A DNA stretch of 64,000 bases. Source: Macrostomum hystrix. Its lineage: Eukaryota; Animalia; Platyhelminthes. A program made the translations under genes and the position numbers. The stretch spans positions 2,356,001-2,420,000 of the forward strand of contig CATNEN010000010.1 in assembly GCA_950097015.1 (NCBI GenBank), given 5' to 3'. Positions within the stretch are counted from its first letter, which is position 1, and the number at the start of each line of letters is the position of its first letter. Under the pieces are notes generated by a model. The model had not been told where the DNA came from and did no database searches. It was given only the letters and a program-made list of their open reading frames with translations. Of the stretch, positions 23,101 through 56,881 are shown piece by piece.

Positions 23101-25664
23101 ACTTGATAAGCTGAATTAGCTCGGCCACGCCACCGCGATCCTCATTGCCAGCCATGCCGTCCACCTCGTCCATTATGACGCAACGTCGGCGACCATCTTC
23201 AACACCCCGACTGCTGCCTCCGCCGAACATGGCGCCTACTGAGAACGTACCAAGTGCCTCGCCGACAATCTCGTGCAGCGAGCGCTTATTCCTGGTGTCG
23301 GAGGCATTTAACTCCAGGCACTCGTAGCCCAGCTCCCGGCAAGCCAGGGTGGCCGTGGTGGTCTTGCCGATGCCCGGCGGTCCGGACAGGAGAGCCGCCT
23401 TCAGCACCGAGCCGTCGTTGTTGAAGCGCTGGAAAGACTGGGCGACACCGCGCTTCACTCCGCTGGCCAGGTGCCGGTGCCAGTCGGTCAGCCAGGCCAC
23501 CAGCTTGCTGGCACAGCTCGCCGGCCCCGCCTGGCCGATAATCTGCTTCAGCGAGCGCGGCTTGTATTTGTCCACCCACATGAGCTGCTGCTGACCCTCC
23601 GCTCTGGGATCAACGCCGCTGCCGCTTTGATTCGCTCCAGTTTTAACTCCGCTGCTTGATGCTTTAACCTCAGCCTGAGCTTTGCCACTTCCGCTGCTCT
23701 GCTTGGCCTCAGCCTGAGCTTTGCCACTTCCGCTGCTTTGCTTGGCCTCAGCCTGAGCTTTGCCACTTCCGCTGCTCTGCTTGGCCTCAGCCTGAGCTTT
23801 GCCACTTCCGCTGCTCTGCTTGACCTCAGCCTGAGCTTTGCCAGTTCCGCTGCTCTGCTTGACCTCAGCCTGAGCTTTGCCAGTTCCGCTGCTCTGCTTG
23901 ACCTCAGCCTGAGCTTTGCCAGTTCCGCTGCTCTGCTTGACCTCAGCCTGAGCTTTGCCAGTTCCGCTGCTCTGCTTGACCTCAGCCTGAGCTTTGCCAC
24001 TTCCGCTGCTCTGCTTGACCTCAGCCTGAGCTTTACAAGTTCCGCTGCTCTGCTTGGCCTCAGCCTGAGCTTTGCCACTACTCGCATTGCTGGATTCATT
24101 CTTTCTGTTATCCTTTTCACTCCCATTGCTGCGCTCGTCGTGTCGTGTCGCACTGCTGCCCGGCTCGGTGCCCATCAGCTCGACGGCGTCATCCTCGCAT
24201 GGATCCACAGACTCAAGGGGCTGTCCGAGCTTCTCACAAAGGAACGCGTAGAACTCCTTTTCAGAGCAGCAGCGAACCCCAGCCTGCTTGGCCTTCTCCA
24301 GCTTGGTGGCCCCGGGCTCCCGGCCCACCACGAGCATGCTGGTCCGCTTGCTCACGCTTTTGGTGACCTTGGCGCCGCACTGGTGAAGCAGCGCCTCGGC
24401 TGATTCCTTCTCTACGTAGTCCAGCACACCAGTAATGACAATTGTCTGGCCAACAAAGCTGTTGGGCTTAGCCTGTGCGGAATGCGGGTTCACACCTCAG
24501 GCATTACGAGTATTTACTCAAACTGGATAAATGAGAAATCAAGTCAAAGTCAAAATTGACGTGGAATATATCAATTTTACCTTGGGCAGTCGCAGCTCGC
24601 CCAGATGCTTGGGTCCATCACGGTGCAAATACGCCATATAGCTGGCCCGCTTAGCTTCTGGTGTGGTGGCAGATCGCTTTAGAGGGGACTTCTCAGCACC
24701 GGCTGTGGCTGGCTCCACTGCATGCGGCGATCTCGGTGGCGAAATCTGGCGCCCCTGTCGTTGCTGCTGCTTCTGGTTTGACTTCTGCTGCTGGGCCTGA
24801 ACAGACTTTAGCTTTGAGCCGCCAGCGACGGAGCTGCCAGCCCTAGGCGAAGCGGAAGCGACGAATGACGATTCAATCACATCCGGGTCATCATCATCAT
24901 CGATGGTCTGAAAGTCATCATCAATTAGTTTACATCAGCCTAGCCCGAACTCAGTACCCGAGTCCACCTTGACATCAAAGCCGATCCCCTAAGTTGCACC
25001 AACCATAGACAGTCTAGCAGTTCCTGGTGCACGCGCGGCAACCGAAGGAGCTGCTGTCAGTTTGCTGGATCCGGCGATGGGGCTGGTGAAGAAGTCCGCC
25101 GGGTTGACCTTTACGCGTTCCGTTGAAGCTGAGGAGCTGCTAGCCTGCTGGGCTAATTGACCGCCGCCGTTTATCCTGCTGAAGTAATTATCCAGAGTGT
25201 TCTTCTGCACCGGTGGCGCAGCTTTAGGACTCTTTGTTGCCGACTTTTTGCCGGAAGAAGCTTGCTGCTGCTTCTGGGCTCCGACTTTGCGCTGCTTGCT
25301 GGGCGAGTGCAGAGGAGAGTCCTCGCCATCTGAAGTGGAGGATGGCGGCATACTTAATCCATTTTGGCTAATCTCAGGATTATTGCAATGCGTAGCTACA
25401 GGTAACATCCCAAACAAGTAGCATGCCTTACCAGATTCTACAAACACTGTCTCTGGATGCTGCTTCTGCTTCTTCCTAGCTGGCTTTGCTTTTGCCGAAG
25501 CCTTTTCCTTGCTTCCAGATCGCAAACTAGCATTTTCTGACTCAGAGTCTGCAAAGATTGGTTTGAAATTAGCAATTTCAACCTGTCAAAAAAGACGAAA
25601 TTAGCCTTTAAAAATGCTCACCTGAGTCTGACAGAACCATAGACTGGCGTTTCTTCTTATTCAT
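20176..25664 (-). CDS. RFC1: Replication factor C large subunit, multi-exon
   Basis: Exons reconstructed at GT-AG sites: MNKKKRQSMVLSDS (ATG 25664); SYMAYLHRDGPK; BRCT (TIVITGVL..GAKVTKSVSKRT); WVDKYKP; Walker A GPPGIGKTT; ELNASD; Walker B VIMDEVDGM; DRGG; PIICICND; RFC1 C-terminal domain; VKAALTRAYNK; lysine-rich tail with stop at 20176-78. An additional upstream exon cannot be excluded. Confidence 0.96.
20790..20900 (+). mobile_element. Degenerate SINE/LINE 3'-tail-like fragment in an RFC1 intron
   Basis: TTAAGTGTATTTCCCAAGGACAC...GAACTCCTGACCTATCGG...AAGTCCGAAGCACTAGCATCTAGG resembles the common L2-type SINE tail pattern. Recognised by eye only. Confidence 0.35.
22915..23065 (+). repeat. 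24-bp minisatellite in an RFC1 intron, about 6 copies
   Basis: CAGGCTCATTGATGCCATCTGTCC repeats just past the exon donor near 23090. Confidence 0.92.
23660..24078 (-). repeat. Coding 39-bp repeat x11 inside RFC1 (KAQAE(V/A)KQSSG(T/S)G)
   Basis: In frame between the BRCT and AAA+ domains. Confidence 0.95.
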
Positions 25665-32393: not shown

Positions 32394-35300
32394 CTACTTA
32401 GACAAGAGGCGCCCTTCCCTGCCGACATCTTCAGCCAAGTCGTCGTAGTCATCGCTGTCCAGATCGTGCTCACGATCGCCACCACCGCGGATGCTGCTAA
32501 CGCGAGTGGTCAGCGTTGAGCTCCGTGATGCTCGCACTTCGCCGAGGCCAGCCGAGTGCGCCGCCTCGGCCGTCTGCGAATCTGACGAGCCCAGTGTTCC
32601 CACTACCTGCGGAAATTCCGCAATGCGGAATTTCTGGCTCGCCTGTGGAAAATCAAGAGGAATTTTGCAATCTGCGGAAATTTGGTTGCTCCGATTTTGC
32701 TCTGATATTTGAATATATGAGGAATTGAGGACACACTTTAGTTTTATACAATCTATATACTAAATATCTTATATATATATATATTTGTCAATATCTAGTA
32801 TTTTCTATTTGTTGGAATTCTCCTTAATTATTTGTACACATACTACTGTTTAAAAGTTCATTTCTTTATTGATTGTAGTTCTTAGTTTAGTCTATGTTCC
32901 ACCGCCACCCTCTTACTAGGAAACTTAGTTTTTCGCATAGAGCTAGAATGGAAATTGGAACCTAATGAGTCTGGAAGCGAGTTTAATGAGTCAATACCAA
33001 TAGTTAATTAAATAGATCAGGTTGGCTAGAAAGACTTTACAAAGTAGCTCAACTTATTTTTCAGCTTTGCTGCCTTTGCGACTTGCGTTTAACTCAATAA
33101 GACAATAACTGAAAAAATATTCTGAGAATACGCTCGTACCCTCGTAGTGAGATGTCTCTAAGCAAGCCTCGTGCAACAGCATTTCGACATGAGTGGTTAC
33201 AGCGATCCATTGATGGACGAGTCCTTAGCGAGTGGCTTCAGCCTGATCGAAGTGACGAACTGCTTGGCTTCTGCACCGTGTGCAAAAAATCATTTCACCT
33301 CGGCACTAGTGGGTTCGGCGCAGTTACAGCCCACGCCCAAGGCAAGAAGCACAAGAGTCGGTTGCCAGTCATGAATGAGACTGGGATAGCACACTTTTTT
33401 CCTACTCAAGGCAGCAAGCCATCTTTCACTGCCATGAAGAAGGCTGACGCAGAAGTGCTAATGGCAGAGCTGCGACTTGGAATCCATTTTATTGAGCACA
33501 ATATTGCGTACAATACAGCCGACCACTCGGGTGTGTACCCAGCTATGTTTCATGATAGCAAAATTGCTCAAGACATGAAGTGCCATCGCACAAAACTGTG
33601 CTATCTTGTTAATCACGCTCTTGCACCAGTGATGCGTGATGAGATGATTCAAGACTTGAACTCTGGCTGCGGACTGTTTTCCCTTTCTATTGACGAGTCA
33701 TCTGATGGGGCACGAAAGCACATGGCAGTTGTAATATCATTTGTGTCGTCGAAGAAGGGAAGGCTGTGTACAACTGCCTTGAAAACAGTTGAAGTTTCTG
33801 ACTGCTCAGCCGCTGCTCTGAAAGAGGAAGTTTTGAAGATTCTCGATGAATTCAACATTCCGATTAGGAACTGTGTTAGCATATCAACAGATGGACCAGC
33901 AGTTATGGTTGGAAAGTTTAACGGCTTCCAAAAAATAATGCATGACTTTGCATCTCATCTTGTTTCCATTGGACCATGCAGTTTGCATATTGTCTCCAAT
34001 GCGGTTCGACGTGCATGTGAAGCCTTTGATGGAAATGTAGAGGACTTCGCTGATGAAGTGTTCTCCTACTTTCAGACCTCGAAAAGGTGGACGCGTTATA
34101 ACAAAGTTCAGTCACTGCTTCAAGTGGCCCAGCATCGCATGTTGCGGCGCGTTGAAACAAGATGGGTGCAGCTTTTGCCTGTTGTTAATAGGCTTATTGA
34201 GCAATATGATTCTCTGGAAGAATTCTTTGTGAAGAATCCATCTCTGATTGAGCAAAAGACCAAAAAGACCAAAGAAATTGCTGAGCACCTAAAGTCGACG
34301 CATACACTGCTTAATCTGCAATTTCTGGCTGCTGTCTTGCCGCATCTAGACCAATTCGAGAAGGCATTTCAGACAGAGGAGCCGTGTGTCCATCTTTTGC
34401 ATGGAGAAGTCCGCAATTTGTTTAGGCAGACTTTGTCATTCTTTTTAAATCCAGCGCACATTCAGGAGAACAATCGACATTTGAGAAATTTGTCGTTGGA
34501 AGGCAAATACTTCCTCTCTAATGAAGCCATCTTTATCGGCGAAGCAGCTAAAGAGACATTAAAAAAAGGCTTGTCGGACACTCAACAGAAGCTCTTTTTC
34601 CTACGTGTTCGCACCTTCTATCGTGAACTTGCATTGTACTTGCAAGAACATTTGCCTCTGTCGAATCCTGTCTTACGCTCGCTACAATTTCTGGATCCGC
34701 AATATCCTATGAAAGTCGGTCTCGCAGCAGCTACTACATCGCTTGCTGCATGTAACCTAGCCAAACAAATGGAATATACACCTGATTCCGTATCAAAAAT
34801 TGATTCCGAATGGCGATGCTTCCTCGTTGACCAACAGGTAGTGGCTTTGGCTAAGGACAATGATGTGGTTACATTTTGGCTTCGCGTGTCAGCCCTAGAG
34901 CTTGGTGGTCAAAAAAAGTACGGCACACTAACCCGACTAGCTTTGGGTGCTCTGACCATTCAGCCAGGCAACGCTGCAGTAGAGCGAGTCTTTAGCGAGT
35001 TATCGGACTTGTTAACGAAAAAACGCAACAAGCTTGGTGAATTGTCTATTGATGCCTGCCTTTTTGTTCGACACTACATCCGCCAATCTGGGCTAGTTGG
35101 TGAGGAGCCTACAACCTGCGAAAACTTTCCATTGACAGACGTCTACGTTCAGTCTGCTGGGAAGGCTCGTTCAGTGTACATGGAATTCCTTCAACAGCAA
35201 AGAGATGCTGATAAGGCCAAGAAAGATGCACGGATTGCCGCTAAACAGTTGGAAGAGCAGCTTGCTGCTGAGATTGAAGTAAACAAGAAGAAGATGGAAT

Positions 35301-38300
35301 TGGAGGCGGCTGAAAAAAAGTTGGCTGCAGAGCGTGAAATAATTGAAGCTGAGAAGCGAGCTGCTTCGGCTATGCTGCTCGAGTATCAGAAAAAAATGAG
35401 GACTTTAGAAGAGCGAGAGGCCAAAGCTCTACATGATGACGCCAAGCTGCTGAAGCGAAAGTTGAAGACTCAAGACGAGCTGGCTGCAGAAGCACTGAAA
35501 AAGGCCGCCAAGATGATATGCAAATCACTAGAAAACAGAACAATGGGGCGTACTAGTAACTAATAAGACAATGTCACGCGTCTTGACTAGAGGTAGGATT
35601 GGATCCCGATCACAAAAGCCTGGGATCCTGGCCAAACTCATGATCATGATTCTGAAATTATTTTGAGATCCCATCCAACCATCTTATATATTCATATCTT
35701 TAAATGCTGAAACCTGAAATTCAATCATGAATTGCAATCCCGATTCCCGAAATTAGGAATCCCAATCCCAAAAATCTTCATCCTGTCCAATCTCTAGTCT
35801 TGGCAGCAGTCTAATTAATAAGCAAAGTATTGTATCTCTAGTAGTTAACTTTACTTAATTAGTTTTACTTTTATTAACAGTTGAATAGAACCTAAAGAAT
35901 GTTTAATGCTTGTAGTTGTAACTAAATAGCAGTTGTGCCTGTGTGTCACGTGACACGTCAAATCTTTTCCGTAAAGTGCAAACATTGAGCCAGCCATTGT
36001 TTTTTCGTTAAAGTAGAATAAAAAGAACTTTTTGCCATCCACAGCCAATGTGATGGGTTGACAACTTGATTGTAAACTGGAAGTCTAGAATACATTGACT
36101 TAGACTTGCTTACTTATTTTGAGTTTAAAAAAATGCTTGTTCAAAAGTTTTTTTCCATAGTTTTGTTGAAAATCTTATCATATTTAATAGGTTAAGCTAT
36201 CTGCGGAATTTTCTTTAGGCTGCGGAGGAAAAATGGGTAGATTGGAGTGGGAACACTGGACGAGCCGCAGCTCACGTCGTCGTCATTTTCGTCGGCCTCA
36301 CTGCAGCTGGCGCTGGCGTCACTTGGTGGCGGTCCGCGGCCGCTGCCAGCGCCTTCGCTACCGCGGACACGCCGGGGCGCCACCTGACGATCGGCGCTGA
36401 ATGGCGCCACCTCCGGCGTGGTGCAGCCTTGGGCACGCGCCCACTGCTCGGCGTTGCGGCCGAACTCCGGGTCGGTTCGGGTGACGGAGGCGCGGCCCTC
36501 GCCGGCCAGCAGGCTGGCGCATTCCACGAAGCCGCCTCGTGCGGCGATTAGCAGGGCGGTGCAGCCCTCGCGGTTGCACCGGTCCGGGTCCAGGCCGAGG
36601 CGACGAAAGCATTTCAGTAGAACCGCGATGCCCGAATCATTGCCAACCCGCGAGCAGTACATGAGCGGCGTGTTGCCTGGTAACGGACAAATTATAGTTG
36701 TACATTCTAGCTGTACATTCTGCCGGACGAATAAGTGCAGAAATAGGCAAAAGAAATTGCTCATGCAAAAATATGAAACTATGAAAATTAAATTAGGCCA
36801 GATGTACAGCAAGTTGCGCAATCCCTGCTATTGCGCGGCGCTTCAAAAGGCTGCGTACAGCTGTTCATCCTGCAGGCTAAACTGGGGCAATAGGAAGTTT
36901 AGTGCCTTGCTTCACTGTACTCGCCAGGGTGCAAGTTTTAACTGTTGCCGAGGATATTCTGGGTGCGTCCAAGTGGCTATAAAGCGGATGTGGATGAAAA
37001 TTCAATTACAATTCTATCGGCGGGTCTTCAACCCGTTTCCTTTCACTCATTCCGGCCTAGGTTAGGGGGGCTTCTCCGCTTTCAGCTGGGTCAGTGGTAG
37101 CGGCAATTTGCCTGGCCAATTTTTTATAGCAAAGTCCGCAAAGAAGTGGGCAATGAGGCTAGAAAGCGAAAGCGGCCACCGTTTTCCGACTGAGTTTCTG
37201 ACTGAGCTGCACTTTCGGGACGAAATGGGACGACCCTGGCGCTGACTTCCTCCAGCTTAATTGCAAGCAAAGTGGCTCAAATAAGCTCAGGCGGGTCACC
37301 TGGGAATGGGCCCTAGGTGCGTGACTCAGGGAGACAAGCGGAATGAAAAGAAGTGAAGATGCAGGGATAGGGAAAAAAAACTCCTCATAGCAGCCTGGAA
37401 ACTGAGCAGCAGGCGCGGAGTCCAGAGCAGCCGGGATATTCTGCGCTTCAATGATCGTGGCAAGTTTCTATGATCATGGCAAGTTTCTATGATCATGGCA
37501 AGTTTCTATGATCATGACAAGTTTCTATGATCATGGCAAGTTTCTATGATCATGGCAAGTTTCTATGATCATGGCAAGTTTCTATGATCAACTTTTAAGT
37601 TAGTCTTTCCCTGTAGAATGTTTCTATTCCATCCGCATGCATCGAGATTGTTGAGACACTTAGAGGCTGTGCGGCTCGTGTGAGCCGAGGTCTTATCAGC
37701 TGTTGCTGCTGCTACTGCTGCCGAAAGCAGCGGCGGGAGAAGGGGAGGGGCTGGAATAACACATGCTAGAGTTGGCGCGGGATGTGGCGACTTGCTGGAA
37801 GCCGATGCTAAAAATAAGATCGGCGGAGGTGAGCGAGGGAGTGAAGCAGCTGAGCAAGCAAGTCCCGCGGGGCGCGGCAGTCAGCTGTTCCGCATTTAGT
37901 TTTGTTTGCTTTTCCTCGTGGAACATTTCAGATCATATACGTATTAACGGATTATCTAAGGATTTGGAAATCATATGTGGTCCCTTCTATTGAGTTCTAG
38001 GAATTTAAATACGAATAGAAATTTGTATTGACAGTGCTTGTGATCGAAGAAAATTTACTGCATTAATCAGGATCCCTCACTTTCAGCCCTGTGTGTGAGT
38101 CGAAAGAAAGTAACCCAGGCTACACGCGTTGATGTGGTATTCATGTACAGATTAATCTCGAACTTGGAATCATACGATAGAAATATGTCTCTAGAAGCAT
38201 GACCAGACCAGACCAGAGGCATGTCACTCTAGACACCCTTTTGTGACTCCATTGGATTAAAATGTTATATATACGATTCTCCTAAGATATTTAAATCTTG

Positions 38301-39764
38301 GGATTCTCCTCAGGGGTTTTCCTTTTTTGGGATTCCCCTTAGGGGTTGCCTTTTTTGGGATTCTTCTTTCGGAATTTAAACCTTGGGAAAGCCCTCAGGG
38401 ATTTCAATTTTGGATTTCTATTAGGTATTTAAATTTGGGATTCCCGTAAGGGATTTTAATATTGGGAGTCTCTTTAGGGATTTAAATTTAGAGTTTTCCC
38501 TTAGAGGTTTACATTTTGGGATTCCATTTGGAGAGTTAAATATTGGGATTCCCCTCAATGATTTGAGTATTTGGAGTGTCCTAAGGATTTCTATCTTGGC
38601 ATTCCCCTAGGGATTGCCATCCGATTCGAGTGAACAGATGAGCAAAAAGGTTAAAGTGCAACGGCAGACCAGGGCCGCACCGTCTTTGTCAGGCAGCTCG
38701 GGGTCCACATTGTGCTTAACCAGCATTCGCACAACATCGTTTCGACGCAGCTCGCAGGCGTAGCTGAGGGCGGTCCTGCCGGCGTCGTCCTGCAAGTTGG
38801 GCTCGGCGCCGTGGGCCAGCAGCATCTCCATGATGCGTTGGCGGCACTTCTCCTCCTGGCGGGTGTGGGCGATGGGAATTTGTTATCCCACTTTGGATGC
38901 AGTAAGACGTCCAAAAATAAAACTAGAATTGTGGCCAGTGATCGAACTATGCAGAAAGTCTATGCACCAAGTCTATGAATCCATTGAGCCCCTCCTGCTG
39001 GAGCGGATTTTTTATACGAGTAAAACGATTTTTTATCGAAACTACACTGACAATTAATTACAGCCATTTGGCAGGCAGGTTTATAACACCATTAATTGCA
39101 TACTTAATACATGGGCCGTGCAAAGTCTCAGGTGTAAATTAAACACCGCCGGTTCCCGCGGCACTGCCAGCCCTCCTGTAGGCAATCGCAAAAATTCAAA
39201 AAAGCCCCAGAATCAGTAGCGGCTTCATCTTCCCTCATGCCCAGAGTCTGCGGAAGCTGGGCTGGGTACAGAAATGGCTGCAATTTATTGCGTGTTCAGT
39301 GCTAGCCTCACCGTGATGTACACTGCTCTAATTAGCGGAGTTTTGCCTTTGAAGTCTCGAAAATTCGTGGCCACTTCCACTTCCTTCTCGCAGGCTTCTA
39401 ACAGGAACTTCACCAGGTGGCTCTTGCCGCGGGTCACCGCGTCCAGGAGAGCATCGGCAGCGCTCTCGAGGCCTGGCACATCGCGAGCGCAGCGCTCCTG
39501 CTGCTGCTGCTGCAACAGCAGCTGTTGCGGCGACTGAGTCGGCTGCGGCGGCTTCGGTGGCGACGACTGCTGCTGCAGCTGCTGGGCCTGCTTACTCATG
39601 CCCTTTGAAGTCTTGGCTTTCTCACTCAGTGCAAGTCGAATCCCTGAGCTCGCCTCGCTAAACACTGCAGCCACTCGCTGGCCCATCTTGGCTGGCAGAA
39701 ATATCCCCAGGGGAGGCTGCGACACTCGGCTTCCTCTTTCCTGCCTCCCTGCCCATGCAGCCAT
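32394..39764 (-). CDS. ANKRD63: Ankyrin-repeat protein, ANKRD63-like; last exon interrupted by a hAT transposon
   Basis: Phase-compatible exons 39764-39312, 38855-38681, 36676-36259 and 32591-32394. Motifs GKSHLVKFLL, GKTPLIRAV, GRTALSYAC, GNTPLMYC and FRRLGLDPDRCNREGCTAL match my recollection of ANKRD63 (FRRLGL..DRTNRAGLTAL). Confidence 0.82.
33152..35563 (+). CDS. hAT transposase, 803 aa, uninterrupted
   Basis: N-terminal Zn finger (FCTVCKK..H..GKKH); SIDESSD (D); STDGPAVM (D); CSLH (CxxH); ETRW; NAAVERVFS (E); coiled-coil tail. Confidence 0.93.
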   Translation: MSLSKPRATAFRHEWLQRSIDGRVLSEWLQPDRSDELLGFCTVCKKSFHLGTSGFGAVTAHAQGKKHKSRLPVMNETGIAHFFPTQGSKPSFTAMKKADAEVLMAELRLGIHFIEHNIAYNTADHSGVYPAMFHDSKIAQDMKCHRTKLCYLVNHALAPVMRDEMIQDLNSGCGLFSLSIDESSDGARKHMAVVISFVSSKKGRLCTTALKTVEVSDCSAAALKEEVLKILDEFNIPIRNCVSISTDGPAVMVGKFNGFQKIMHDFASHLVSIGPCSLHIVSNAVRRACEAFDGNVEDFADEVFSYFQTSKRWTRYNKVQSLLQVAQHRMLRRVETRWVQLLPVVNRLIEQYDSLEEFFVKNPSLIEQKTKKTKEIAEHLKSTHTLLNLQFLAAVLPHLDQFEKAFQTEEPCVHLLHGEVRNLFRQTLSFFLNPAHIQENNRHLRNLSLEGKYFLSNEAIFIGEAAKETLKKGLSDTQQKLFFLRVRTFYRELALYLQEHLPLSNPVLRSLQFLDPQYPMKVGLAAATTSLAACNLAKQMEYTPDSVSKIDSEWRCFLVDQQVVALAKDNDVVTFWLRVSALELGGQKKYGTLTRLALGALTIQPGNAAVERVFSELSDLLTKKRNKLGELSIDACLFVRHYIRQSGLVGEEPTTCENFPLTDVYVQSAGKARSVYMEFLQQQRDADKAKKDARIAAKQLEEQLAAEIEVNKKKMELEAAEKKLAAEREIIEAEKRAASAMLLEYQKKMRTLEEREAKALHDDAKLLKRKLKTQDELAAEALKKAAKMICKSLENRTMGRTSN
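35588..35796. mobile_element. 209-bp hAT-type MITE nested in the large hAT
   Basis: TAGAG...CTCTA ends; 8-bp flanks GTCTTGAC and GTCTTGGC (7/8 identical). Confidence 0.7.
37452..37590 (+). repeat. 19-bp minisatellite (TGATCATGGCAAGTTTCTA), about 7 copies, intronic
   Basis: Tandem units read directly. Confidence 0.93.
38290..38605 (+). repeat. Degenerate ~20-bp repeat (TTTGGGATTCCCCTAGGG-like), intronic
   Basis: Recurring GGGATT(C/T)CC and AGGG(A/G)TT motifs. Confidence 0.6.
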
Positions 39765-40971
39765 TGGGCCGAGGAGCTCGCGGTAGAGGGGAAGAAAGCT
39801 GGATGGAAGAAAAGGATAGAGCAGGATCTACTGGTGCCCGCACCCGACTGCTGTGTTGCCCATCCACAGGCAGCTCGAATCTAGACACTGAGCTGCAGGC
39901 AATCGGCACGTATCATTTCCGTCTCACCGGCCAGGAGTATAGGGTGCAGTGCAAGCCTGCAATCTGTTGCCATGACAACAGCTTGTAGAATGCGACACGC
40001 CGCGGGCTTCTTGAGTGTCGTCGATTCCGCGCCACTGCCTCGCGTAGATAAAATCGGCAGCGATTTTTTTCTTTCAAGCGCGATCGAGCAGCCAGACAGA
40101 CCCCGATTAACAGCAGCAAGCACTGCCCTAGTGCAGGCCTCTCAAATTGCCGATCGTGCATGGTTACATATTGTTGTAGGATGTTCTTTCGGGACCGCGC
40201 ACACCGGCAACTGATCCATCAGGCGATCCCTCAGATTTTCACACTAAAATGCCCCCCGGGGTTCGTTTATGACGAATATCCGAAAAATGACATGACATAA
40301 ATATTAAAAAATGACGAGTGTGTATCCTTATGAGATTCATTTTGAATTAGCTCATGACACAGCAAAAATGACTGTTGCACTTTCATTTTGTCAAAAAGAT
40401 CAGTTTCGTCCAATTCCAGCTGCAACTCTCACGTCATATCTGCACTCATTATGATTTATCCGTGACATCGCCATTCATTGTTAATAACTTAATTAGACTA
40501 TTCGTAAGAAATTTTTGTGAATAAAAAACCTTCTATACAGTCGGATTTTAACGAAATGATATTCTAGAGGTAACTCACAGAAAAAAATATTTAAAGCTAT
40601 ATAGAATGAAAGATAATTCTGTGCATACATTTACAAAACTTGGCCTGTCAGGCTTCAACCCCTATAAAAAGCACAGCCGTCAGATTTGACACATTGTGCA
40701 GTCGTCATTTCTGTGCAAGAATACATTTCGTCATAATTTAACGCCATTGAAAAGCACAGCCGTCAGATTTGACACATTGTGCAGTCGTCATTTCTGTGCA
40801 AGAATACACTTAGTCATGTATTAACGCCGTTAGAAAGCTTGAAATAAAATAAATAAAAAAACATGTAGAAAATAGTTACTCAGACAGAGGCTCAAATTAA
40901 TTTGCAACACAAAAGAATTGTTGCTTTCGAAGAAATGATATATTAAAGATTAAAGATATATTAAAATTAAA

Positions 40972-41498
40972 GAACTGTGATTGAGATGACGCAAAAATTA
41001 GAGCTCAATACATGATGAAATATAATGAAACATTAAAGAACTGTGATTGAGATGACGCAAAATTAGAGCTCAATACATGATGAAATATAATGAAACATTA
41101 AAGAACTGTGATTGAGATGACGCAAAATTAGAGCTCAATACATGATGAAATATAATGAAACATTAAAGAACTGTGATTGAGATGACGCAAAATTAGAGCT
41201 CAATACATGATGAAATATAATGAAACATTAAAGAACTGTGATTGAGATGACGCAAAATTAGAGCTCAATACATGATGAAATATAATGAAACATTAAAGAA
41301 CTGTGATTGAGATAACGCAAAAATTAGAGCTCAATACATGATGAAATATAATGAAACATTAAAGAACTGTGATTGAGATGACGCAAAAATTAGAGCTCAA
41401 TACATGATGAAATATAATTAAACATTAAAGAACTGTGATTGAGATGACGCAAAAATTAGAGCTCAATACATGATGAAATATAATGAAACATTAAAGAA
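40972..41498 (+). repeat. 65-66-bp tandem repeat, about 8 copies
   Basis: GAACTGTGATTGAGATGACGCAAAATTAGAGCTCAATAC... starts at 40972, 41038, 41103, 41168 and onward. Confidence 0.95.
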
Positions 41499-42339
41499 CC
41501 AGTGAACGAGATTACGAAAAGCATTTGAGCCCGAAACGAAACGCCATTAGATACATTATGAAAAACGAAACGGAACGAAAGCAGTAAATTAGTAAATTAT
41601 TAGCGATTGCTTGAACGATGTCAAGTAGGCTTTTCGTACTGTCGGTGCCGATTCCAGAACCAGAACCATTTTGTCAATTATAACTTTTCAGCACCTAGAT
41701 GAGAAATAGTCGAGAGATATTCAGAAACTTTTGAGAAAGATTGACTATAATAATAAAAGTGGCTAAAAATCGTATAAAATCGAATCTTCTTGCTTTATCG
41801 TGTTATTAACAGTCATTAGTTATAACGCTATTTTTCTTGTATAATTCTGGTTCTGGAATCGCTTCGTGAAAAGCCTCATGAATGCTAGTGAATTTTTCTT
41901 AGAAGCCTTAGACAATTTTAGGTTCATTAACGTTGACTTATTGCTTTACACAGTCAGCGCTTAGGATTTTAGCTAATAGCTCGTATAATATCAAATATTT
42001 TATGCAACTTTGCTAGAAAAGTTTAGACGTTTAAAAAAATGTGTTAAACTCGCAAAAACAGAACTTTTCGAACATAGAAAATTACGAGTATCTTGGTGAT
42101 TGCAATCACGATCAATGGCACATGACAAAAAACGACACTACTTTTTTCTCCATTTTGAGCTTCTAATTTGGTAGTTAAATGATTAGCATGATTTTATGGA
42201 TACAGCATGAGTGAAATTATGCTTGCTTTAGTTTGGAGTTTCTAATATTCCCTTTACTGTGCAAATAAGTACAGGAACCATTTTGACGATTCCAGAAGTG
42301 AAAAAATGTACTACAGGTTGAGTTATTGTTAAAAACAGA

Positions 42340-45300
42340 CTACGACTTAGCTATATTTAGTCGATTCACTTTGCTTAACATCAGGCTTTGTCGTGCTGAG
42401 TTCATTCCCGCCAACAGAACAGGATCATTACTGCAGTCAGCAGAGGCGTCAGTCGGACTAAACGGTTTCACGTTTTTGTAAGTTATCCACTCTCGAGTAG
42501 GTGGTTCCTCGAAAAACTGAACATGCAGAAAATGATTGCCACTGGAAGCAATGCGAGAAAAAGCGTTACTTTTTTGCTCGCGGCAAACTAGTGCTGGCCA
42601 CCAAGGAAAACTTTTTAGTTTTGCCAAGACGACGTCACCCTCTGCAAACGTTCGCGGTTGTTCCTGCTCCTGCACTAGCGTTGACTGATCATTTGGATGA
42701 ATTAGTGATGATACTATTCTTGAAATGGCTTGCGCCTTTGAACGTCTTCCATGATTAATAGTTTTGAAGGTCTTCGGATCCTGCGACTTGGCTCGATTCT
42801 TGCGGACTTTAGTACTGATCTGGCGGCTTAGGTGAACTCGCTTAGATGCACCTTTGCTAGCTGCAGTTTTACTTTTCTTCATATCAGCATTCTGTGCCTC
42901 ACTGACAAACTCAGGAGTCCTCACTTCGACTTCAGACTCTAGAGCCACCTGGCTCACTTCTTTGCATGGCTCTGAAAGAGCGATATCGAAAAGCTCTTTT
43001 GCAACTTTTTCACCTTCTTTGGCTAGACTAGACGTAGTAGCCATGTAGCTTTGCACTGCTACTTGCTTTGTATGATTCATTCGCTTGTGCAGTACACTTT
43101 GCTTTTCTTCGTTTAGGTGCTCTCGACCTTTTGTGGTGAAAAAGTGTCGAAAAAATTTGACGTCGAACTGCTTCAGATCGTTCAAGATCGGGTAAGTGCG
43201 GCGTAGACTACGCAGGAAAGTCGAAAAGGAGTGGCCCGCGACTTGACGACCGTAATCGAAGAAAAAATCTGAGAGAACAGCGCCACAATTCAGCCTGAAC
43301 TCACCATAGGCCAGCAAGCTTTCCTTAACTTCAGAAACAGATACGAAAATAGCACCTTGTGTCGAGGTTTTATGGTCCACAACCTCAAACATGGCATCGG
43401 GATCGTTCTCCAAATCCCTCTTCCACTCGAAAAATTGCTCCATCTTTGCGTTCGACACAGCGTCCGCGCGATGAAAGTTTGCTTTGCCGAAAATGAAGTG
43501 AAGGCCAAGGAACAAAAGATGCTGTTGAGATCCAACAGACGTCGATTCGGCGGCTTTTCGAAAGAACTCAAGGACGTTTAAGCAAACATTTAGTTCGTTC
43601 ACAGAAAGAAGGCTCTTGTCTAATTTGCGCCTGCGCTTTGCTTCGGCGATTTTTTTGTCGCGGACTCTGGACTTTCCGTAACTATGACATGTGCATAGAA
43701 ATGATTCTAAGTCACTTGACAATCCGTTGCTGGAAACAAGCCTTGAGAATGAGCTCTTTAGATATTGGCCAAAGCGCTTTAATCCTTCAACGTAGGACTT
43801 CGTGCCGTCGGAGAATGAATTGGATTTGCCAGTTAGGAAGACGGTTATTTGAGAGCGATGCTTCTCTCTAATAATCTCTAGTGGTCGAACAACTCCAAGA
43901 ACCGACATAATTTTATCGAGAGACCTTCGTGACTGCTTAGCAGTTGACTCGGCAAATTTCCCACCACTAAACAACCTTAGATGATTGTAGAAACTTTCCG
44001 AAGTTGGCTCAGAACTCCATTCTTCTTCAGCTGCAGCAGATGAACTAGCGTGCGCAGATTTCGCCATCCAGCTACTTGAAACATATGACGAGACGATTTT
44101 CTCCTTCACTCCAGCAATGCACTCTTTTGCTTCTTCGGAGCTCATTTTGTGCCAGTTTTTCAGGTGGCTTGAAATGTTAGTCACAGGGATTTCACAGCGT
44201 GGACAAACACCAACTGCATTTGAAGATGTGGCTATCAGATGTTCTTCTTTATCTTCATCTGTCGATTCAGTTGAGTTTTCGACATCAAGCGACTTCTGCA
44301 GTTCACAGTCCCTCGGCATCTGTGTAGTAGAACTCTGTGCATCTTCGGCAGCAAGAAACTGGATAGTAAATCTCTTACTTTTTTCAATGAGACTCTTGCG
44401 GCCCTCAGATCTGAGCTCGTCGGCATGAAATAGCTTGTAGTGTTCTAGAAATCTGGATTTTTTTATTAAATGACACTTGTCTAAGTGGCACCTGTAATCC
44501 TTGCCTTGTCGCTTTGTTGATTTGTCGGTATTCCTCTTAACTTTATGCAGCTTACCAAATCGCTTTTCGTTGAATGAAATTAACTCCTCTCTAAGGTCAT
44601 CAAAGGAAGCATATTCCAACATCTGAGCTTCATGCTTCCTAAAAAAATGTTGCCTAATTCTTGATGCCTTAATAATGTGCGTTGGATCGACATGACATAC
44701 ATAGTCAACGCCTTGACGCGGCTTCAATATAGTCCTTTTGGAACTGGCAATGTTTCCGATCGATCGAAGAGACTTGTCCATTTTCACACAGCGATTATCA
44801 TCGATTGTGAAGCAGATAAGGTCACCTTTACCTTCCAACAAAGCAGGCTGCAGACGGAAAATACTCGATGATAGAGACTGTGATGCCTCATCAGCGTCGA
44901 GGTCACAGTCGGTTTCATTGTAGAGCCGGACTTTTGAATTACTATTTGCACCTACTTTCCTCTTACTGACTTGGCTTGTCACTTGTACCTGATCAGACGC
45001 GGCAGTAAGCGACGCCTTCAGGTCGATGACTTGGACTCCATCTTGCACCTGATCAGACGCGGCAGTAAGCGACGCCTTCAGGTCGATGACTTGGACTCCA
45101 TCTTGCACCTGATCAGACGCGACAGTAAGCGACGCCTTCGGGTTGATGACTTGGACTCCATCTTGCACCTGATCAGACGCGGCAATCAGTGGCGCCTTCG
45201 GGTCGATGACTTGGACTCCATCTTGCACCTGATCAGACGCGACAATCAGTGGCGCCTTCGGGTCGATGACTTGGACTCCATCTTGCACCTGATCAGACGC

Positions 45301-45735
45301 GGCAGTAAGCGACGCCTTCGGGTCGATGACTTGGACTCCATCTTGCACCTGATCAGACGCGGCAATCAGTGGCGCCTTCGGGTCGATGACTTGGACTCCA
45401 TCTTGCACCTGATCAGACGCGGCAATCAGTGGCGCCTTCGGGTCGATGACTTGGACTCCATCTTGCACCTGATCAGACGCGGCAATCAGTGGCGCCTTCG
45501 GGTCGATGACTTGGACTCCATCTTGCACCTGATCAGACGCGGCAATCAGTGGCGCCTTCGGGTCGATGACTTGGACTCCATCTTGCATTTGTTTAGACTG
45601 TGGATCATCAAATAGAAGATTTTGCATCTCTAGCATTGAAATTGGTGCATCGTTTAGGAGATGTTGAAGCAGGCTTGTGGATGCATCTGGAGGCTTGCGT
45701 GCTGGCCGATTAGGTGACCAATGATTGGATTCCAT
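42340..45735 (-). CDS. Zinc-finger / tyrosine recombinase / PWWP fusion protein (about 1131 aa)
   Basis: First in-frame ATG is 45735, after a TTTCGCTCTTCAG acceptor. C2H2-like fingers; recombinase motifs NFHR (R), HKT (K), KFFRH (R), MNH-x8-Y; C-terminal GDVVLAKLKSFPWWPALV..HVQFFEEPPTREWI (PWWP). Confidence 0.85.
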   Translation of the reverse strand: MESNHWSPNRPARKPPDASTSLLQHLLNDAPISMLEMQNLLFDDPQSKQMQDGVQVIDPKAPLIAASDQVQDGVQVIDPKAPLIAASDQVQDGVQVIDPKAPLIAASDQVQDGVQVIDPKAPLIAASDQVQDGVQVIDPKASLTAASDQVQDGVQVIDPKAPLIVASDQVQDGVQVIDPKAPLIAASDQVQDGVQVINPKASLTVASDQVQDGVQVIDLKASLTAASDQVQDGVQVIDLKASLTAASDQVQVTSQVSKRKVGANSNSKVRLYNETDCDLDADEASQSLSSSIFRLQPALLEGKGDLICFTIDDNRCVKMDKSLRSIGNIASSKRTILKPRQGVDYVCHVDPTHIIKASRIRQHFFRKHEAQMLEYASFDDLREELISFNEKRFGKLHKVKRNTDKSTKRQGKDYRCHLDKCHLIKKSRFLEHYKLFHADELRSEGRKSLIEKSKRFTIQFLAAEDAQSSTTQMPRDCELQKSLDVENSTESTDEDKEEHLIATSSNAVGVCPRCEIPVTNISSHLKNWHKMSSEEAKECIAGVKEKIVSSYVSSSWMAKSAHASSSAAAEEEWSSEPTSESFYNHLRLFSGGKFAESTAKQSRRSLDKIMSVLGVVRPLEIIREKHRSQITVFLTGKSNSFSDGTKSYVEGLKRFGQYLKSSFSRLVSSNGLSSDLESFLCTCHSYGKSRVRDKKIAEAKRRRKLDKSLLSVNELNVCLNVLEFFRKAAESTSVGSQQHLLFLGLHFIFGKANFHRADAVSNAKMEQFFEWKRDLENDPDAMFEVVDHKTSTQGAIFVSVSEVKESLLAYGEFRLNCGAVLSDFFFDYGRQVAGHSFSTFLRSLRRTYPILNDLKQFDVKFFRHFFTTKGREHLNEEKQSVLHKRMNHTKQVAVQSYMATTSSLAKEGEKVAKELFDIALSEPCKEVSQVALESEVEVRTPEFVSEAQNADMKKSKTAASKGASKRVHLSRQISTKVRKNRAKSQDPKTFKTINHGRRSKAQAISRIVSSLIHPNDQSTLVQEQEQPRTFAEGDVVLAKLKSFPWWPALVCREQKSNAFSRIASSGNHFLHVQFFEEPPTREWITYKNVKPFSPTDASADCSNDPVLLAGMNSARQSLMLSKVNRLNIAKS
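44985..45590 (-). repeat. Coding 60-bp repeat x10 (QDGVQVID(P/L)KA(P/S)L(I/T)AASDQV)
   Basis: In frame in the N-terminus of the recombinase ORF. Confidence 0.96.
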
Positions 45736-45877
45736 CGCTGAAGAGCGAAATGAAAACCGAATTAGACTGAATTTAGTTGCTTCTTCAGACTGCTGTTCAC
45801 ACACATGTGGTAATTGTACGATGTGAAAATCTCAGATTTTCGGGTTGAGACATTGAGTTGCTAATTTAAGTTGAGTT

Positions 45878-46632
45878 GCAGTCTCACAGAACACACAGAG
45901 GTCATATTTTCTAAAATGTGCAACCGTCACTTTTGCAGTCTCACAGAACACACAGAGGTCATATTTTCTAAAATGTGCAACCGTCACTTTTGCAGTCTCA
46001 TAGAACACACAGAGGTCATATTTTCTAAAATGTACTACCGTCACTTTTGCAGTCTCACAGAACACACAGAGGTCATATTTTCTAAAATGTGCAACCGTCA
46101 CTTTTGCAGTCTCACAGAACACACAGAGGTCATATTTTCTAAAATGTGCAACCGTCACTTTTGCAGTCTCACAGAACACACAGAGGTCATATTTTCTAAA
46201 ATGTGCAACTGTCACTTTTGCAGTCTCATAGAACACACAGAGGTCATATTTTCTAAAATGTGCAACCGTCACTTTTGCAGTCTCATAGAACACACAGAGG
46301 TCATATTTTCTAAAATGTGCAACCGTCACTTTTGCAGTCTCACAAAACACACAGAGGTCATATTTTCTAAAATGTGCAACCGTCACTTTTGCAGTCTCAC
46401 AGAACACACAGAGGTCATATTTTCTAAAATGTGCAACCGTCACTTTTGCAGTCTCATAGAACACACAGAGGTCATATTTTCTAAAATGTGCAACCGTCAC
46501 TTTTGCAGTCTCATAGAACACACAGAGGTCATATTTTCTAAAATGTGCAACCGTCACTTTTGCAGTCTCATAGAACACACAGAGGTCATATTTTCTAAAA
46601 TGTGCAACCGTCACTTTTGCAGTCTCACAGAA
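45878..46632 (+). repeat. 57-bp tandem repeat, about 13 copies
   Basis: GCAGTCTCACAGAACACACAGAGGTCATATTTTCTAAAATGTGCAACCGTCACTTTT units. Confidence 0.97.
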
Positions 46633-48574
46633 CAAATTTCTAGGTCTCTAATTGTCTCAAAAATCTTTTTGAAAGATACCAATGGCTCTCTTATAGACCA
46701 TTTCAGTATTCAATTAGGCAATATTATCCTGGAATGTTTATGTTACTAGGTAATACTATCCAAGACATAGCTTTATAATATTTTCATTTGTACTAATGTT
46801 AAGAATTCTAAAGTTAGCTAATATCCATATTGCCAATACAAAGCATATTTATGGTCAAAAGTCTGACAATACAGGAAGTGCTTTAAAATAATATGCATTC
46901 AATGTTTAAAAAATTGCTACCAAGCTATCAATACTAGGATTCAAGTCAAGATATTGCTTATTTACCTGTCTTCAATTTATATAATATAAACACTATCACT
47001 ATCTAGATAGCAAGATAACTAGCATAGAGGTCTTAAGTTGGATTATACTATCCACAAAGGAATGACTAGCTTTAGAGTTGGTCAATGTCATATAAACCAT
47101 ACCAAAAACATATAGACTTATTGCAAAGCAATGTTTTGGCAAATACATGGCATATTAGAAAGAAAGTCATACCTATAAAAATACCTCTTAATGTGAAGTT
47201 CTAGCAGAATGCTTTTGGTAACTTATTTTTCTGGGTACCAACTATTACCATGCTTAACACTCATAAGATATATAATCAATGCAATGATTAAACCATAAAA
47301 AAATTTGGCTGCCAACATAGCCAACACCAGCTATACTATAAATAGAAAAAACTTAATAAAGTGTTAGAATTAGAACTTATCAAGTTTTTATATATATAAT
47401 TTCATACTTTATTAACCAAAATGTCCTTAGTAAATGATCTACCTAACATACTCTGTTTCAAATGCCTTTATAATTTACATACTTAAACTTTACTAGATTG
47501 CTATTGACTTATTGAACTTTAAACCAAAATTATTCGCATTGAGCCTATATAATCTCAATAACCCATATTATCTATAATGTACTTATTGAAGGTCTTATCA
47601 TATATAGAAAAGTTTATCCTAGAAAAAAAGTTACAAAATTGCTATTAGGACCGTCAAAAGCCTATCTAGCAACAGAATGCTGACTATAGAAAGTTAGGAT
47701 ATAGATTTTAGATGCATGCACCCTGCAGTTCAAGCCCACATTATTATTTAAACAACTTTAGCTATTATTAGGCCAAAGGAAAAAGTTCCACACAGAGAAG
47801 AAAGGAAAGGAAAAGTAATTAAAATTGGTCGTCGAAGCCAATGTGTGAGGACCATCTCTCATGTGTAAGGACCAAGTTAGTAGCACTAGGTTTTAGCAAC
47901 GTCTAGCAATCTCTATCGACCTAGAAGCGTGCTGTAGTTTGAAAAAAACTACTTAATATTTGCAATATGTTCTTATACAATTAGTTAAGTAATATAAAAC
48001 AAAAAATGTAATTACTAAAACTAAATTAAGCAAAAGCCATTAAAATTAAAATCAGGAAACACTCTTCTTTGTTTAACCGTAAATAAAATGTTAAAGCCGT
48101 CAGCGTGTGTCATTTTGTCAGATTTTGTTCTGCTTGTGTCATGGGTCAATATTTTCTGTCCACGTCATATTTTTTTGCTCTAATAGACCGCTTCTTTATC
48201 ATCCTATGGCTTTCTTACTGCAGCACATGATAGAAGGCATGGAAAGGCTCGTGGTTCACGTGGTTTTAAGTAAAAATGTTGTTCGTCATTTTTTATGACT
48301 CAGAAAAAATGACGTTTTTGCTAAAATCTTACTTTATGACACATTCTGTCGTCATATTTAAGAAAAATCGTCAGAAACGTACCATTAGGGGCTCTCGTCT
48401 CAATCTATACGGGGCAAGCACTGGCTATCATCCCTGCTGGCCACACAGGCCAATTCCAGGTTTCAAGGAGAGTTTTCTGCGCCAAGCTTAACACAACTTG
48501 GTCGGCTAAAACATTTACTTACAAAGCGATTTTGAGTTGAGCAACAGGAAACAGGGCTGTCCAAAATAAGGGTC

Positions 48575-55384: not shown

Positions 55385-56881
55385 TCAAACATCCTCCGCC
55401 GGCTTGTCCTTTTCGCGCCCAGCCACTGTCCGCCTCAGTGCGCGAACAAACGCCGACTCTTTCCGAACGAAAAAATCGATTTTCAAGGCCGCACTGCGCC
55501 GCTGATGGGGCTGGAGGCACTGCAGCAGGTTGACGTCCTTGTAGAAGAAATGCGGCAGGCTGCCTATGTGCATGTGGTCGCGCACGCATGACAGCAGGTC
55601 GCTGGTGTAGTGCGCGAGATTCGCCCGCTGCCAGCGGATTCCCACCAGGTCAATCTCAGTCTCGGCCAGGTGGAACATCACGTGCTTCAGCATGTCGCGG
55701 CTAATGCACCGCAGCTCCGGCTGGGAACTGCAGAAGTCGGTTAAGCCACGCCAAACTCGTAACCGAAGGCCTCGGTCTGCCCTTGACAGCGACTGCAATA
55801 GCAGAGCTTCCTCCATGAAGTACTGCACAGTCCACAGGTCTTGGTTTAGCGATCCTTGAGTGGCAAACGAGTAGGGCCTGGGTGTCAGGTAGGCGTGCTC
55901 ATCGCTCGGGAACTTGATGACTGGCGTACACCTCAAGTGCAGGACTCGAGCTGTCAACTCGGGCGCTTTGCCTCTTCGAGGTCTGCTAGGAATGTAAACC
56001 ACTGTGGCTGGGATCCCAGGCTCTAGGAGGTCGGGAGCGACATCTTCCTCTGCTGCTTCATCGTCTTCATTTTCTCCGTCCTCATGATCCACTTCAGTGC
56101 CGGGCGCAGCGTCCTCCACGTGAATAGCGAACGAGACGGGATCATGATCATCGTCGCCACCGGAAGCTGCTTGCTGTCCCGGAGGCGGAGCTGCCAGCTG
56201 GGTGTCTAGATATTTGGATGTCACTGTGACAGTGACATCAATCGAGCCGACATCCTTGTTAATTTCTACTTGTTGTACAGTGAGATCCTGTCCATATCGC
56301 ACGGAAATCTGTTGCACTGCGTTATTCACCAGTTTCCAGGTGGACTTCAGCGCCACTGAGGAAGACAAGTAGCGCTTTGATGATTTTAAAAAGTCGAACG
56401 GATCTTTCTCGAATGCCGTCTGCGGTGGCTTCTGCTTCACTGCGGGAATTTTGATCCCAATCAAGCCGGGATTGCCCTCCGGTTGGATTCGCAAGGGAAA
56501 GCCGGGAGGCAGGCGAAAAGGAAGCAGAATTTCGTAGCGCTCTTGGTCGCCCCACACTAGATCCTCTGCAGTGGACGCAACTACCGGTGCATCGTAATTG
56601 ATTCGGTAGTTATTGACGTGCAGTTTGTAGTACATCTCCTGACAAATGCGGTCTAGGTAACGCCGGGTCTCCTGGAAGCTGGTCTCGGCGTCTGAGGCGA
56701 TAAATGGCGGGCAGAGGCGCTCCAGAGCATCCAACACTGGCGACGGCTCCTCAATGATGGTCTTCTCACTCGTCAGACCGTTGAACAGGACATTGTTTGA
56801 ACCATCGGCCGCACCTCCCTGGTTTGTTGCGGTGGGCAGTTGTCCAAAAGATCGATAGCGGGCGTTAGACTTTGTCTTCAT
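55385..56881 (-). CDS. Mab-21 / cGAS-fold nucleotidyltransferase-like protein (498 aa), probably catalytically inactive
   Basis: Mab-21 C-terminal pattern W..QYFMEE.LL..., S..MLKHVMF, W....LA, LPHFFY.DVNLL. N-terminal ASTAEDL..ERYEILLP and LRCTPVI align to the degenerate active-site strands. Confidence 0.75.
   Translation of the reverse strand: MKTKSNARYRSFGQLPTATNQGGAADGSNNVLFNGLTSEKTIIEEPSPVLDALERLCPPFIASDAETSFQETRRYLDRICQEMYYKLHVNNYRINYDAPVVASTAEDLVWGDQERYEILLPFRLPPGFPLRIQPEGNPGLIGIKIPAVKQKPPQTAFEKDPFDFLKSSKRYLSSSVALKSTWKLVNNAVQQISVRYGQDLTVQQVEINKDVGSIDVTVTVTSKYLDTQLAAPPPGQQAASGGDDDHDPVSFAIHVEDAAPGTEVDHEDGENEDDEAAEEDVAPDLLEPGIPATVVYIPSRPRRGKAPELTARVLHLRCTPVIKFPSDEHAYLTPRPYSFATQGSLNQDLWTVQYFMEEALLLQSLSRADRGLRLRVWRGLTDFCSSQPELRCISRDMLKHVMFHLAETEIDLVGIRWQRANLAHYTSDLLSCVRDHMHIGSLPHFFYKDVNLLQCLQPHQRRSAALKIDFFVRKESAFVRALRRTVAGREKDKPAEDV

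Follow-up and report, generated by a model that had tools for sequence, protein, structure and literature searches.

A stretch of 64,000 nucleotides (nt) of the genome of the flatworm Macrostomum hystrix (assembly GCA_950097015.1, contig CATNEN010000010.1, positions 2,356,001 to 2,420,000 of the forward strand), hereafter the window, holds one copy of an element of about 8.1 kb (approximately 40252-48391) whose only enzyme is a tyrosine recombinase (YR), and the open reading frame (ORF) of this recombinase forms the core of the element. The element is concluded to be a Crypton-like transposon that has captured a PWWP domain and was active recently, and it belongs to a YR-only DNA transposon family of macrostomid flatworms. 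With good confidence it is read as a Crypton-like transposon with no enzyme other than its YR, which carries a PWWP domain of the MSH6/NSD type and is most likely tethered by it to nucleosomes methylated at lysine 36 of histone H3 (H3K36). A first-pass annotation, made from the letters of the DNA, had proposed a Crypton-like transposon of 3.4 kb; the Crypton-like character is supported, and the unit proved to measure about 8.1 kb and to have short inverted ends.

The minus strand is open over 42340-45804 from an upstream GTG, and translation from the ATG at 45735 gives a stop-free protein of 1131 amino acids (aa), as the first-pass annotation had described. An exact database look-up of this protein returned no record. 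Residues 575-930 were modelled with AlphaFold2 (AF2) on a 13-sequence alignment (A2), which gave a predicted local distance difference test score (pLDDT) of 86 and a predicted template modelling score (pTM) of 0.64; the larger alignment was needed, a 2-sequence alignment having given a pLDDT of 35. The best matches of the model in a Foldseek search of the PDB were XerA, archaeal Xer, XerD, XerH, Cre, integron integrase (IntI) and lambda Int, and VIA-align placed it with XerA (Z 11.9), XerH (Z 11.2), poxvirus topoisomerase IB (Z 11.1) and Cre (Z about 10). All of the top 37 VIA-align matches were YRs or topoisomerases IB (Z 6.2-11.9), unrelated helical proteins falling below Z 5.8; the recombinase fold that had been expected of this region is thus the one returned by the structure search. 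The best 30 Swiss-Prot models found by Foldseek were XerC or XerD in every case, aligned end to end, the best fold clusters of the AlphaFold database (AFDB) consisted of unnamed proteins of metazoans with the labels 'Tyr recombinase' or 'core-binding domain', and the ESM Atlas yielded unnamed eukaryotic clusters with Xer-like structures and no cluster combining a YR with a PWWP domain. A similar YR fold with a SET methyltransferase annotation occurs in the oyster protein K1R6F8, an AFDB match, and in an ESM Atlas cluster (SET 98%), and fusions of YRs with chromatin domains may be more widespread.

The five catalytic residues named in the first-pass annotation (R, K, R, H and Y) were all recovered, as was the H-to-Y spacing of 9, within a pattern close to that of Cre (R-K 33, R-H 25, H-Y 9). 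R756, K789, R863, H888 and Y897 are kept in every relative that covers them, down to 23% identity (A2, 13 relatives). The modelled fold and the presence of five of the six active-site positions support a probably active enzyme, with K860, at the sixth position, as a caveat.

At the C-terminus, the PWWP domain that had been likened to those of MSH6 and NSD proteins was confirmed by Pfam (PF00855, E 2.3e-14, 54.1 bits versus a cutoff of 25.6, aa 1033-1099) and by phmmer against the PDB, in which the PWWP of human MSH6 matched over aa 1029-1130 (3e-13), followed by those of NSD3 and NSD2. Residues F1043, W1046 and F1074/F1075 align with the Y-PWW-P and VQFF segments of MSH6 at positions which we take to form its aromatic cage. 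A word-indexed homology search with the PWWP region gave no match.

The limits of the element are marked by short inverted arms, which were missed by a generic inverted-repeat search, being too short and imperfect. The 10-mer CGTTTNTGAC occurs at exactly two sites in the window (40264 on the plus strand and 48379 on the minus strand), inverted around the ORF, and also exactly twice, again inverted around the ORF, in locus L001 of Macrostomum lignano, the gene of which (P0001) encodes a relative that is 55% identical and has the same ends around it. The 14-mer that includes GG has two sites without mismatch, the chance expectation being 0.7 with at most one mismatch allowed. Clusters of ATGAC/AAAATGAC(A/G) motifs are found at matching subterminal positions in the window and in L001: ATGAC/GTCAT reaches 6 per 200 bp at the left end versus a window mean of 0.5, and AAAATGACR has 10 sites in the window versus 1.6 expected, five of the sites being at the two ends. 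Pieces of the element ends, one lying some 2.6 kb upstream of the ORF and the other some 2 kb downstream of it, are collinear with M. lignano and 76% identical to it (blastn), and beyond the ORF core and these two pieces the non-coding DNA of the window and L001 could not be aligned by blastn. A C-run, 2-4 nt and a G-run are present just outside the arm at all four ends (40252-40261 and 48382-48391 in the window, 7203-7212 and 16582-16591 in L001).

No target-site duplication (TSD) was detected at the window copy or the L001 copy with either choice of terminus, nor was there a clear short direct repeat at the termini of the window element. A second enzyme was not found, the YR gene being the sole non-repeat ORF of at least 100 aa in 40252-48391; the other frames of at least 100 aa inside the element run through tandem repeats only, and Rfam and tRNA scans of 36-52 kb gave no match. 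The 57-bp and 65-bp tandem arrays that flank the ORF within the element are near-perfect.

In the deep DNA sequencing run X2, a flank contig (38400-40250, depth 88) stops at the element end and element contigs, free of differences, begin at 40258 with a depth of 305-336, about 3.5 times that of the flank. An X2 contig covering 41470-43720 (2251 nt, depth 305, 0 differences) spans the C-terminus of the recombinase and the PWWP domain, and other flanking sequence is joined before 40258 both in X2 and in X3, a run with a second organism label. Because of the 3.5-fold step in depth at the terminus and these alternative flanks, the data indirectly indicate several near-identical copies of the element, all carrying the PWWP domain. 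A single-copy reading taken from the low-coverage run X1 was withdrawn, all X1 pieces lying inside the element. A single-copy syntenic orthologue, which the first-pass annotation had named as the sign of a domesticated host gene, was not found: in addition to the excess depth in X2, no flanking gene is common to the window and L001, between which there is no synteny. Since the X2 contigs break at the outer C-run, this run may be flank or crossover core, a hint of a palindromic target; the outermost 6 nt of the left end (40252-40257) are open to the same two readings.

The runs X4-X7 are taken to be RNA because the ankyrin gene adjoining the element is spliced in them and intergenic DNA is uncovered; in this gene, 38854 is joined to 39311 on the minus strand with GT..AG borders, corresponding to an intron of 456-476 nt (X4, X6). 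The same runs cover approximately 42198-46321 at 100% identity without joints, so that recombinase and PWWP domain are on one unspliced RNA. Depth in X4 and X5 reaches about 46321, within the 57-bp array, and is zero beyond, and since RNA coverage starts there the promoter may sit in this array. X4 also contains a second version of window positions 43726-43918 and 44527-44627, about 93% identical, differing mostly by C>T/G>A and with a 2-nt insertion after 43916, which probably represents a transcribed decaying copy.

An exhaustive HMMER search of 1.84 billion representative sequences recovered only 13 relatives, comprising two M. lignano gene families (P0001; P0009, P0014 and P0015) and short contigs, several of which, including P0002 and P0008, come from one environmental metagenome, the contigs of these two being too short to reach the element ends; a word-indexed homology search with the YR region returned P0001 only. 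The layout of the family is constant, with N-terminal tandem repeats that vary, CHHC-like and C2H2 zinc fingers, the YR and, at the C-terminus, a tail that varies as well. Where the window protein has its PWWP domain, the M. lignano proteins P0001 and P0009 have a basic repeat tail, and no PWWP domain was found within 10 kb downstream of the M. lignano ORF. Because the M. lignano tails are basic repeats, the PWWP domain is regarded as a lineage-specific acquisition at a tail slot that seemingly tolerates varied chromatin or DNA tethers.

Three copies of a sister family in M. lignano, Mlig028483, lie on three large contigs; they are 99.2-99.8% identical, 7.5-8.4 kb long and sharp-edged between unrelated flanks, and they show directly that single-gene elements are mobilised by recombinases of this family. 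Two of the copies are intronic, one in a UQ_con gene and the other in a TRAM_LAG1 gene, and short inverted arms are again present at the very ends. The junctions of the copies in L002 and L004 pass from g(g/c)c into CCAT at the start and from GCC into ccat at the end, leaving a CCAT/GCCCCAT direct repeat of 5-7 nt composed of element-end and element-start sequence; across the sister family this microhomology varies (5, 7 and 0 nt) and there is no fixed TSD. Short terminal direct repeats arising from target microhomology have been described for Cryptons (PMC3212892, PMC13465315), and the Mlig028483 junctions match the trace that would be expected of a circle junction recombining with a similar target, as in the Crypton model. 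The length of a copy in this family depends on a 444-bp tandem repeat coding for repeats at the N-terminus of the protein.

Several points weigh against the reading of the element as an active transposon with a chromatin-tethered recombinase. Neither the whole protein nor, even at E 10, its core matched Pfam Phage_integrase (PF00589), and the family profile gave chance matches and no recombinase among PDB sequences; because no recombinase was matched at the sequence level, the YR assignment rests on predicted structure and motifs. The histidine of the HxxR motif is replaced, by K860 here and by R or T in relatives, and full recombinase activity is not assured given K860. The position of the termini is known to within about 8 nt, a single copy of the window element was readable, copy number derives from k-mer depths of assembled contigs, which are a rough measure and not copy counts, and neither an empty site nor a circle junction was seen. 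Moreover, the M. lignano relatives are without a PWWP domain, and therefore this domain is not needed for the mobility of the family.

The missing histidine would suit an impaired recombinase that persists as a DNA-binding relic, its copies being old duplications instead of recent transpositions, and the transcribed 93%-identical copy with its +2 frameshift agrees with such decay. This is nevertheless unlikely: the family shows no variation at five of the six active-site positions, topoisomerase IB works with a lysine at the position equivalent to the HxxR histidine (K220 in vaccinia), the X2 copies are identical at the k-mer level over 2251 nt, and the sister copies in M. lignano have hardly diverged. 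It is also conceivable that the element is a transposon in which the PWWP domain takes no part in site choice and instead holds the circle or the protein on mitotic chromatin, binds DNA non-specifically or counters silencing. PWWP domains, including those of LEDGF, MSH6 and DNMT3, also bind DNA by a basic surface, and the basic repeat tails of P0001 and P0009 suggest a slot for generic chromatin or DNA tethers; the retained aromatic-cage positions argue for methyl-lysine reading, and this alternative is considered doubtful, though worth keeping in view.

Two further explanations concern the origin of the element as a whole. The ORF could be a domesticated host gene, an ex-transposon recombinase kept as a chromatin protein in the manner of ZMYM2-4, QRICH1 and KCTD1, with PWWP domain and fingers serving host regulation and the conserved ends acting as regulatory DNA. 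The domestication of Cryptons is known (PMC3212892), the ORF is intact and transcribed, M. lignano has a relative of the same layout with non-coding pieces kept collinear, and the family is small (13 matches in 1.8 billion representatives). Yet the catalytic R, K, R, H and Y are all kept, whereas most of the tetrad has been lost from DUF3504 proteins (PMC3212892), the two conserved pieces repeat each other in inverted orientation and carry subterminal repeats, and the sister family has clearly transposed; together with the unshared flanking genes, the 3.5-fold depth and the alternative flanks at the terminus, this makes domestication very unlikely. Alternatively, the ends could belong to a DDE-type (cut-and-paste) transposon that has the recombinase gene as cargo and depends in trans on a transposase from elsewhere in the genome, for which the Mariner-Crypton chimera MarCry-1 (MarCry-1_FO; PMC3212892) provides a precedent. 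Elements of the hAT, PIF, Mutator and P groups typically have terminal inverted repeats (TIRs) accompanied by short subterminal repeats, and the window contains a hAT transposase gene at a distance of 5 kb. This origin is very improbable, given that, wherever the termini are placed, neither the window copy nor the M. lignano copy shows a TSD, that the element contains no transposase ORF, that the recombinase gene is accompanied by the same ends in both species, and that the sister-family junctions have microhomology of variable length and not a fixed TSD.

Cryptons and other YR elements serve as the model for the mechanism proposed here. Recognition of the inverted arms and of the subterminal AAAATGAC(A/G) sites would fall to the zinc fingers and core-binding domain, and the recombinase would cut and rejoin DNA through a 3'-phosphotyrosine at Y897. 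Excision would release a circle, the putative intermediate, which would integrate at a short matching core without target duplication. The PWWP domain, with its intact cage, is predicted to bind methylated H3K36 and could thereby tether the enzyme, alone or in complex with the circle, to nucleosomes methylated at H3K36, steering integration with a bias towards transcribed gene bodies. The full proposal, in which the YR reads H3K36 methylation through a captured PWWP domain and so prefers transcribed gene bodies, and in which the element represents an undescribed animal family of Crypton-like transposons with inverted ends and a swappable C-terminal tether slot, is put forward tentatively.

The N-terminal part of the protein contains the repeats and fingers of the family layout. 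The ten 20-aa repeats of the first-pass annotation correspond to a 60-nt unit present in 10.1 copies with 96% matches according to Tandem Repeats Finder (TRF), and DGVQVI recurs over aa 52-232. The position of this tandem repeat is kept and the repeat itself differs in every family member (20 aa with a VQVID core in the window, HVEGTEG in P0001, 23 aa in P0002 and 50 aa in P0014), the repeats evolving quickly. Three C2H2-like fingers had been proposed; three are present, of which only the third is C2H2-like (C-x2-C-x10-H-x4-H), the other two having the spacing C-x5-H-x9-H-x4-H by pattern match, which by sequence would place them rather closer to CHHC/U11-48K-like fingers than to classical C2H2. 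Pfam gave weak hints only on the fingers, which are also kept in the relatives P0001-P0010. Among the neighbouring genes, the hAT transposase ORF lies beside or inside the ankyrin-repeat gene (exons 36192-39764). Coordinates are collected in Table 1.

Table 1. Features of the element, its protein, neighbouring genes in the window and copies of the M. lignano sister family.
Feature	Position	Strand	Evidence or remark
Single ORF	42340..45735	-	repeats, zinc fingers, YR, PWWP; RNA contigs match at 100% identity
Ten 60-nt repeats (20-aa units, VQVID core)	44982..45587	-	TRF
Three zinc fingers	44149..44697	-	aa 347-368, 416-437, 511-529; pattern match
Tyrosine recombinase	42946..44013	-	core-binding about aa 575-709, catalytic about aa 710-921; AlphaFold model and conserved motifs
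R756 (NFHR)	43468-70	-	catalytic residue
K789 (HKT)	43369-71	-	between two predicted strands in the AF2 model, as a hairpin lysine should be
R863 (KFFR)	43147-49	-	catalytic residue
H888	43072-74	-	catalytic residue
Y897	43045-47	-	nucleophile position
Basic linker between recombinase and PWWP	42652..42945	-	aa 931-1028; K/R/S-rich
PWWP domain	42346..42651	-	aa 1029-1130; Pfam core aa 1033-1099 (42439-42639)
3' untranslated region	42198..42339	-	RNA contigs reach 42198 (X4), 42280 (X5), 42315 (X6), 42293 (X9)
Left TIR (3' side of ORF)	40252..40275	+	C-run/G-run, then arm GG-TT-CGTTT-A-TGAC
Left subterminal cluster	40276..40420	+	ATGAC/AAAATGAC(A/G) motifs; motif density
Tandem arrays downstream of ORF	40647..41499	.	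83 bp x2 at 40665-40838, 65 bp x8.2 at 40966-41499; TRF and repeat families
57-bp x13.3 tandem array just upstream of ORF	45876..46634	.	TRF
Right subterminal clusters	48090..48367	-	ATGAC/AAAATGAC(A/G) motifs; 76% identical to M. lignano end over 123 nt
Right TIR (5' side of ORF)	48368..48391	-	CCCC-TAAT-GG-TA-CGTTT-C-TGAC
803-aa ORF, hAT transposase gene	33152-35563	+	hAT dimerisation domain and DUF4371
ORF, RFC1-like large clamp-loader subunit	22913-24493	-	BRCT and AAA ATPase domains
498-aa ORF, cGAS/Mab21-like nucleotidyltransferase family	55385-56881	-	Mab-21 C-terminal domain
Mlig028483 copies (M. lignano)	L002:7692-15640; L003:8481-16903; L004:4399-11902		sister family

Nearly all chromatin readers known from transposons are chromodomains or PHD fingers, borne by retroelement integrases or DDE transposases; with a PWWP domain fused to a tyrosine recombinase, a new reader and also a new class of enzyme would join them. 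Within the literature searched, no paper combined Crypton with PWWP and those naming both PWWP and tyrosine recombinase describe no fusion, in agreement with the earlier impression that the combination had not been described. The occurrence of the domain here versus its absence from the M. lignano relatives offers a natural experiment on reader-directed integration in a genus that can be cultured and made transgenic. If the proposal is true, integration into gene bodies would be an independent, covalent version of the LEDGF-lentivirus strategy, and designers of integration tools might take an interest in a compact recombinase that targets gene bodies by itself. The family also widens the picture of Cryptons by its inverted arms and subterminal clusters of putative binding sites.

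The PWWP domain of LEDGF/p75 reads H3K36me2/3 and directs lentiviral integration into transcribed gene bodies; in that system the domain resides in a host factor, whereas here it is a covalent part of the enzyme of the element, for which targeting is proposed. The best PWWP sequence matches are MSH6, NSD2 and NSD3 (E 3e-13 to 1e-6), with the PWWP motif, the VQFF strand, the PTR-W segment and the C-terminal helices all aligning with MSH6, but these are host repair and methyltransferase proteins to which the rest of the window protein is dissimilar. With the Xer, Cre and integron recombinases the protein shares a two-domain fold that aligns over its full length and the order and spacing R...K...R...H...Y; it differs from them in its low identity (9-16%), in having no Pfam match, in being eukaryotic, and in the additional ~570 N-terminal residues (repeats and fingers) and C-terminal PWWP domain.

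The chromoviruses, Ty3/gypsy elements with an integrase chromodomain such as MAGGY and Tf1, likewise equip their own integration enzyme with a C-terminal reader of histone marks, but in these and other reader fusions a chromodomain or PHD finger is attached to a retrotransposon DDE integrase or to a DDE transposase (Grau-Bove et al., bioRxiv 10.1101/2021.11.30.470311). The fusions of transposons with chromatin domains that this survey singles out involve Chromo, PHD, SNF2 and SET, and not PWWP (bioRxiv 10.1101/2021.11.30.470311). Starship elements, mobilised by 'captain' recombinases, are also large eukaryotic DNA elements moved by a YR, and TIRs and short direct repeats occur in some of them (PMC13465315, PMC10104507); they are, however, fungal, use a DUF3435 YR and measure tens to hundreds of kb with cargo, unlike this 8-kb single-gene animal element. 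The element resembles Cryptons (Goodwin 2003; Kojima and Jurka 2011, PMC3212892), in which the YR is also the only enzyme, reverse transcriptase and TSD are absent, copy number is low, an accessory DNA-binding module is fused to the YR and, as in the sister family, microhomology direct repeats occur. Judged by their published description, Cryptons differ in lacking TIRs and long terminal repeats, in contrast to the imperfect TIRs of 14-24 bp and subterminal clusters found here, and in the 4-6-bp direct repeats expected of them, which are not clear at the window termini; they retain the His of the R-H-R-Y tetrad that is missing here, and their known accessory domains are GCR1_C/helix-turn-helix (HTH), C48 peptidase and DDE transposase (PMC3212892, PMC13465315), whereas the element of M. 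hystrix carries a PWWP domain.

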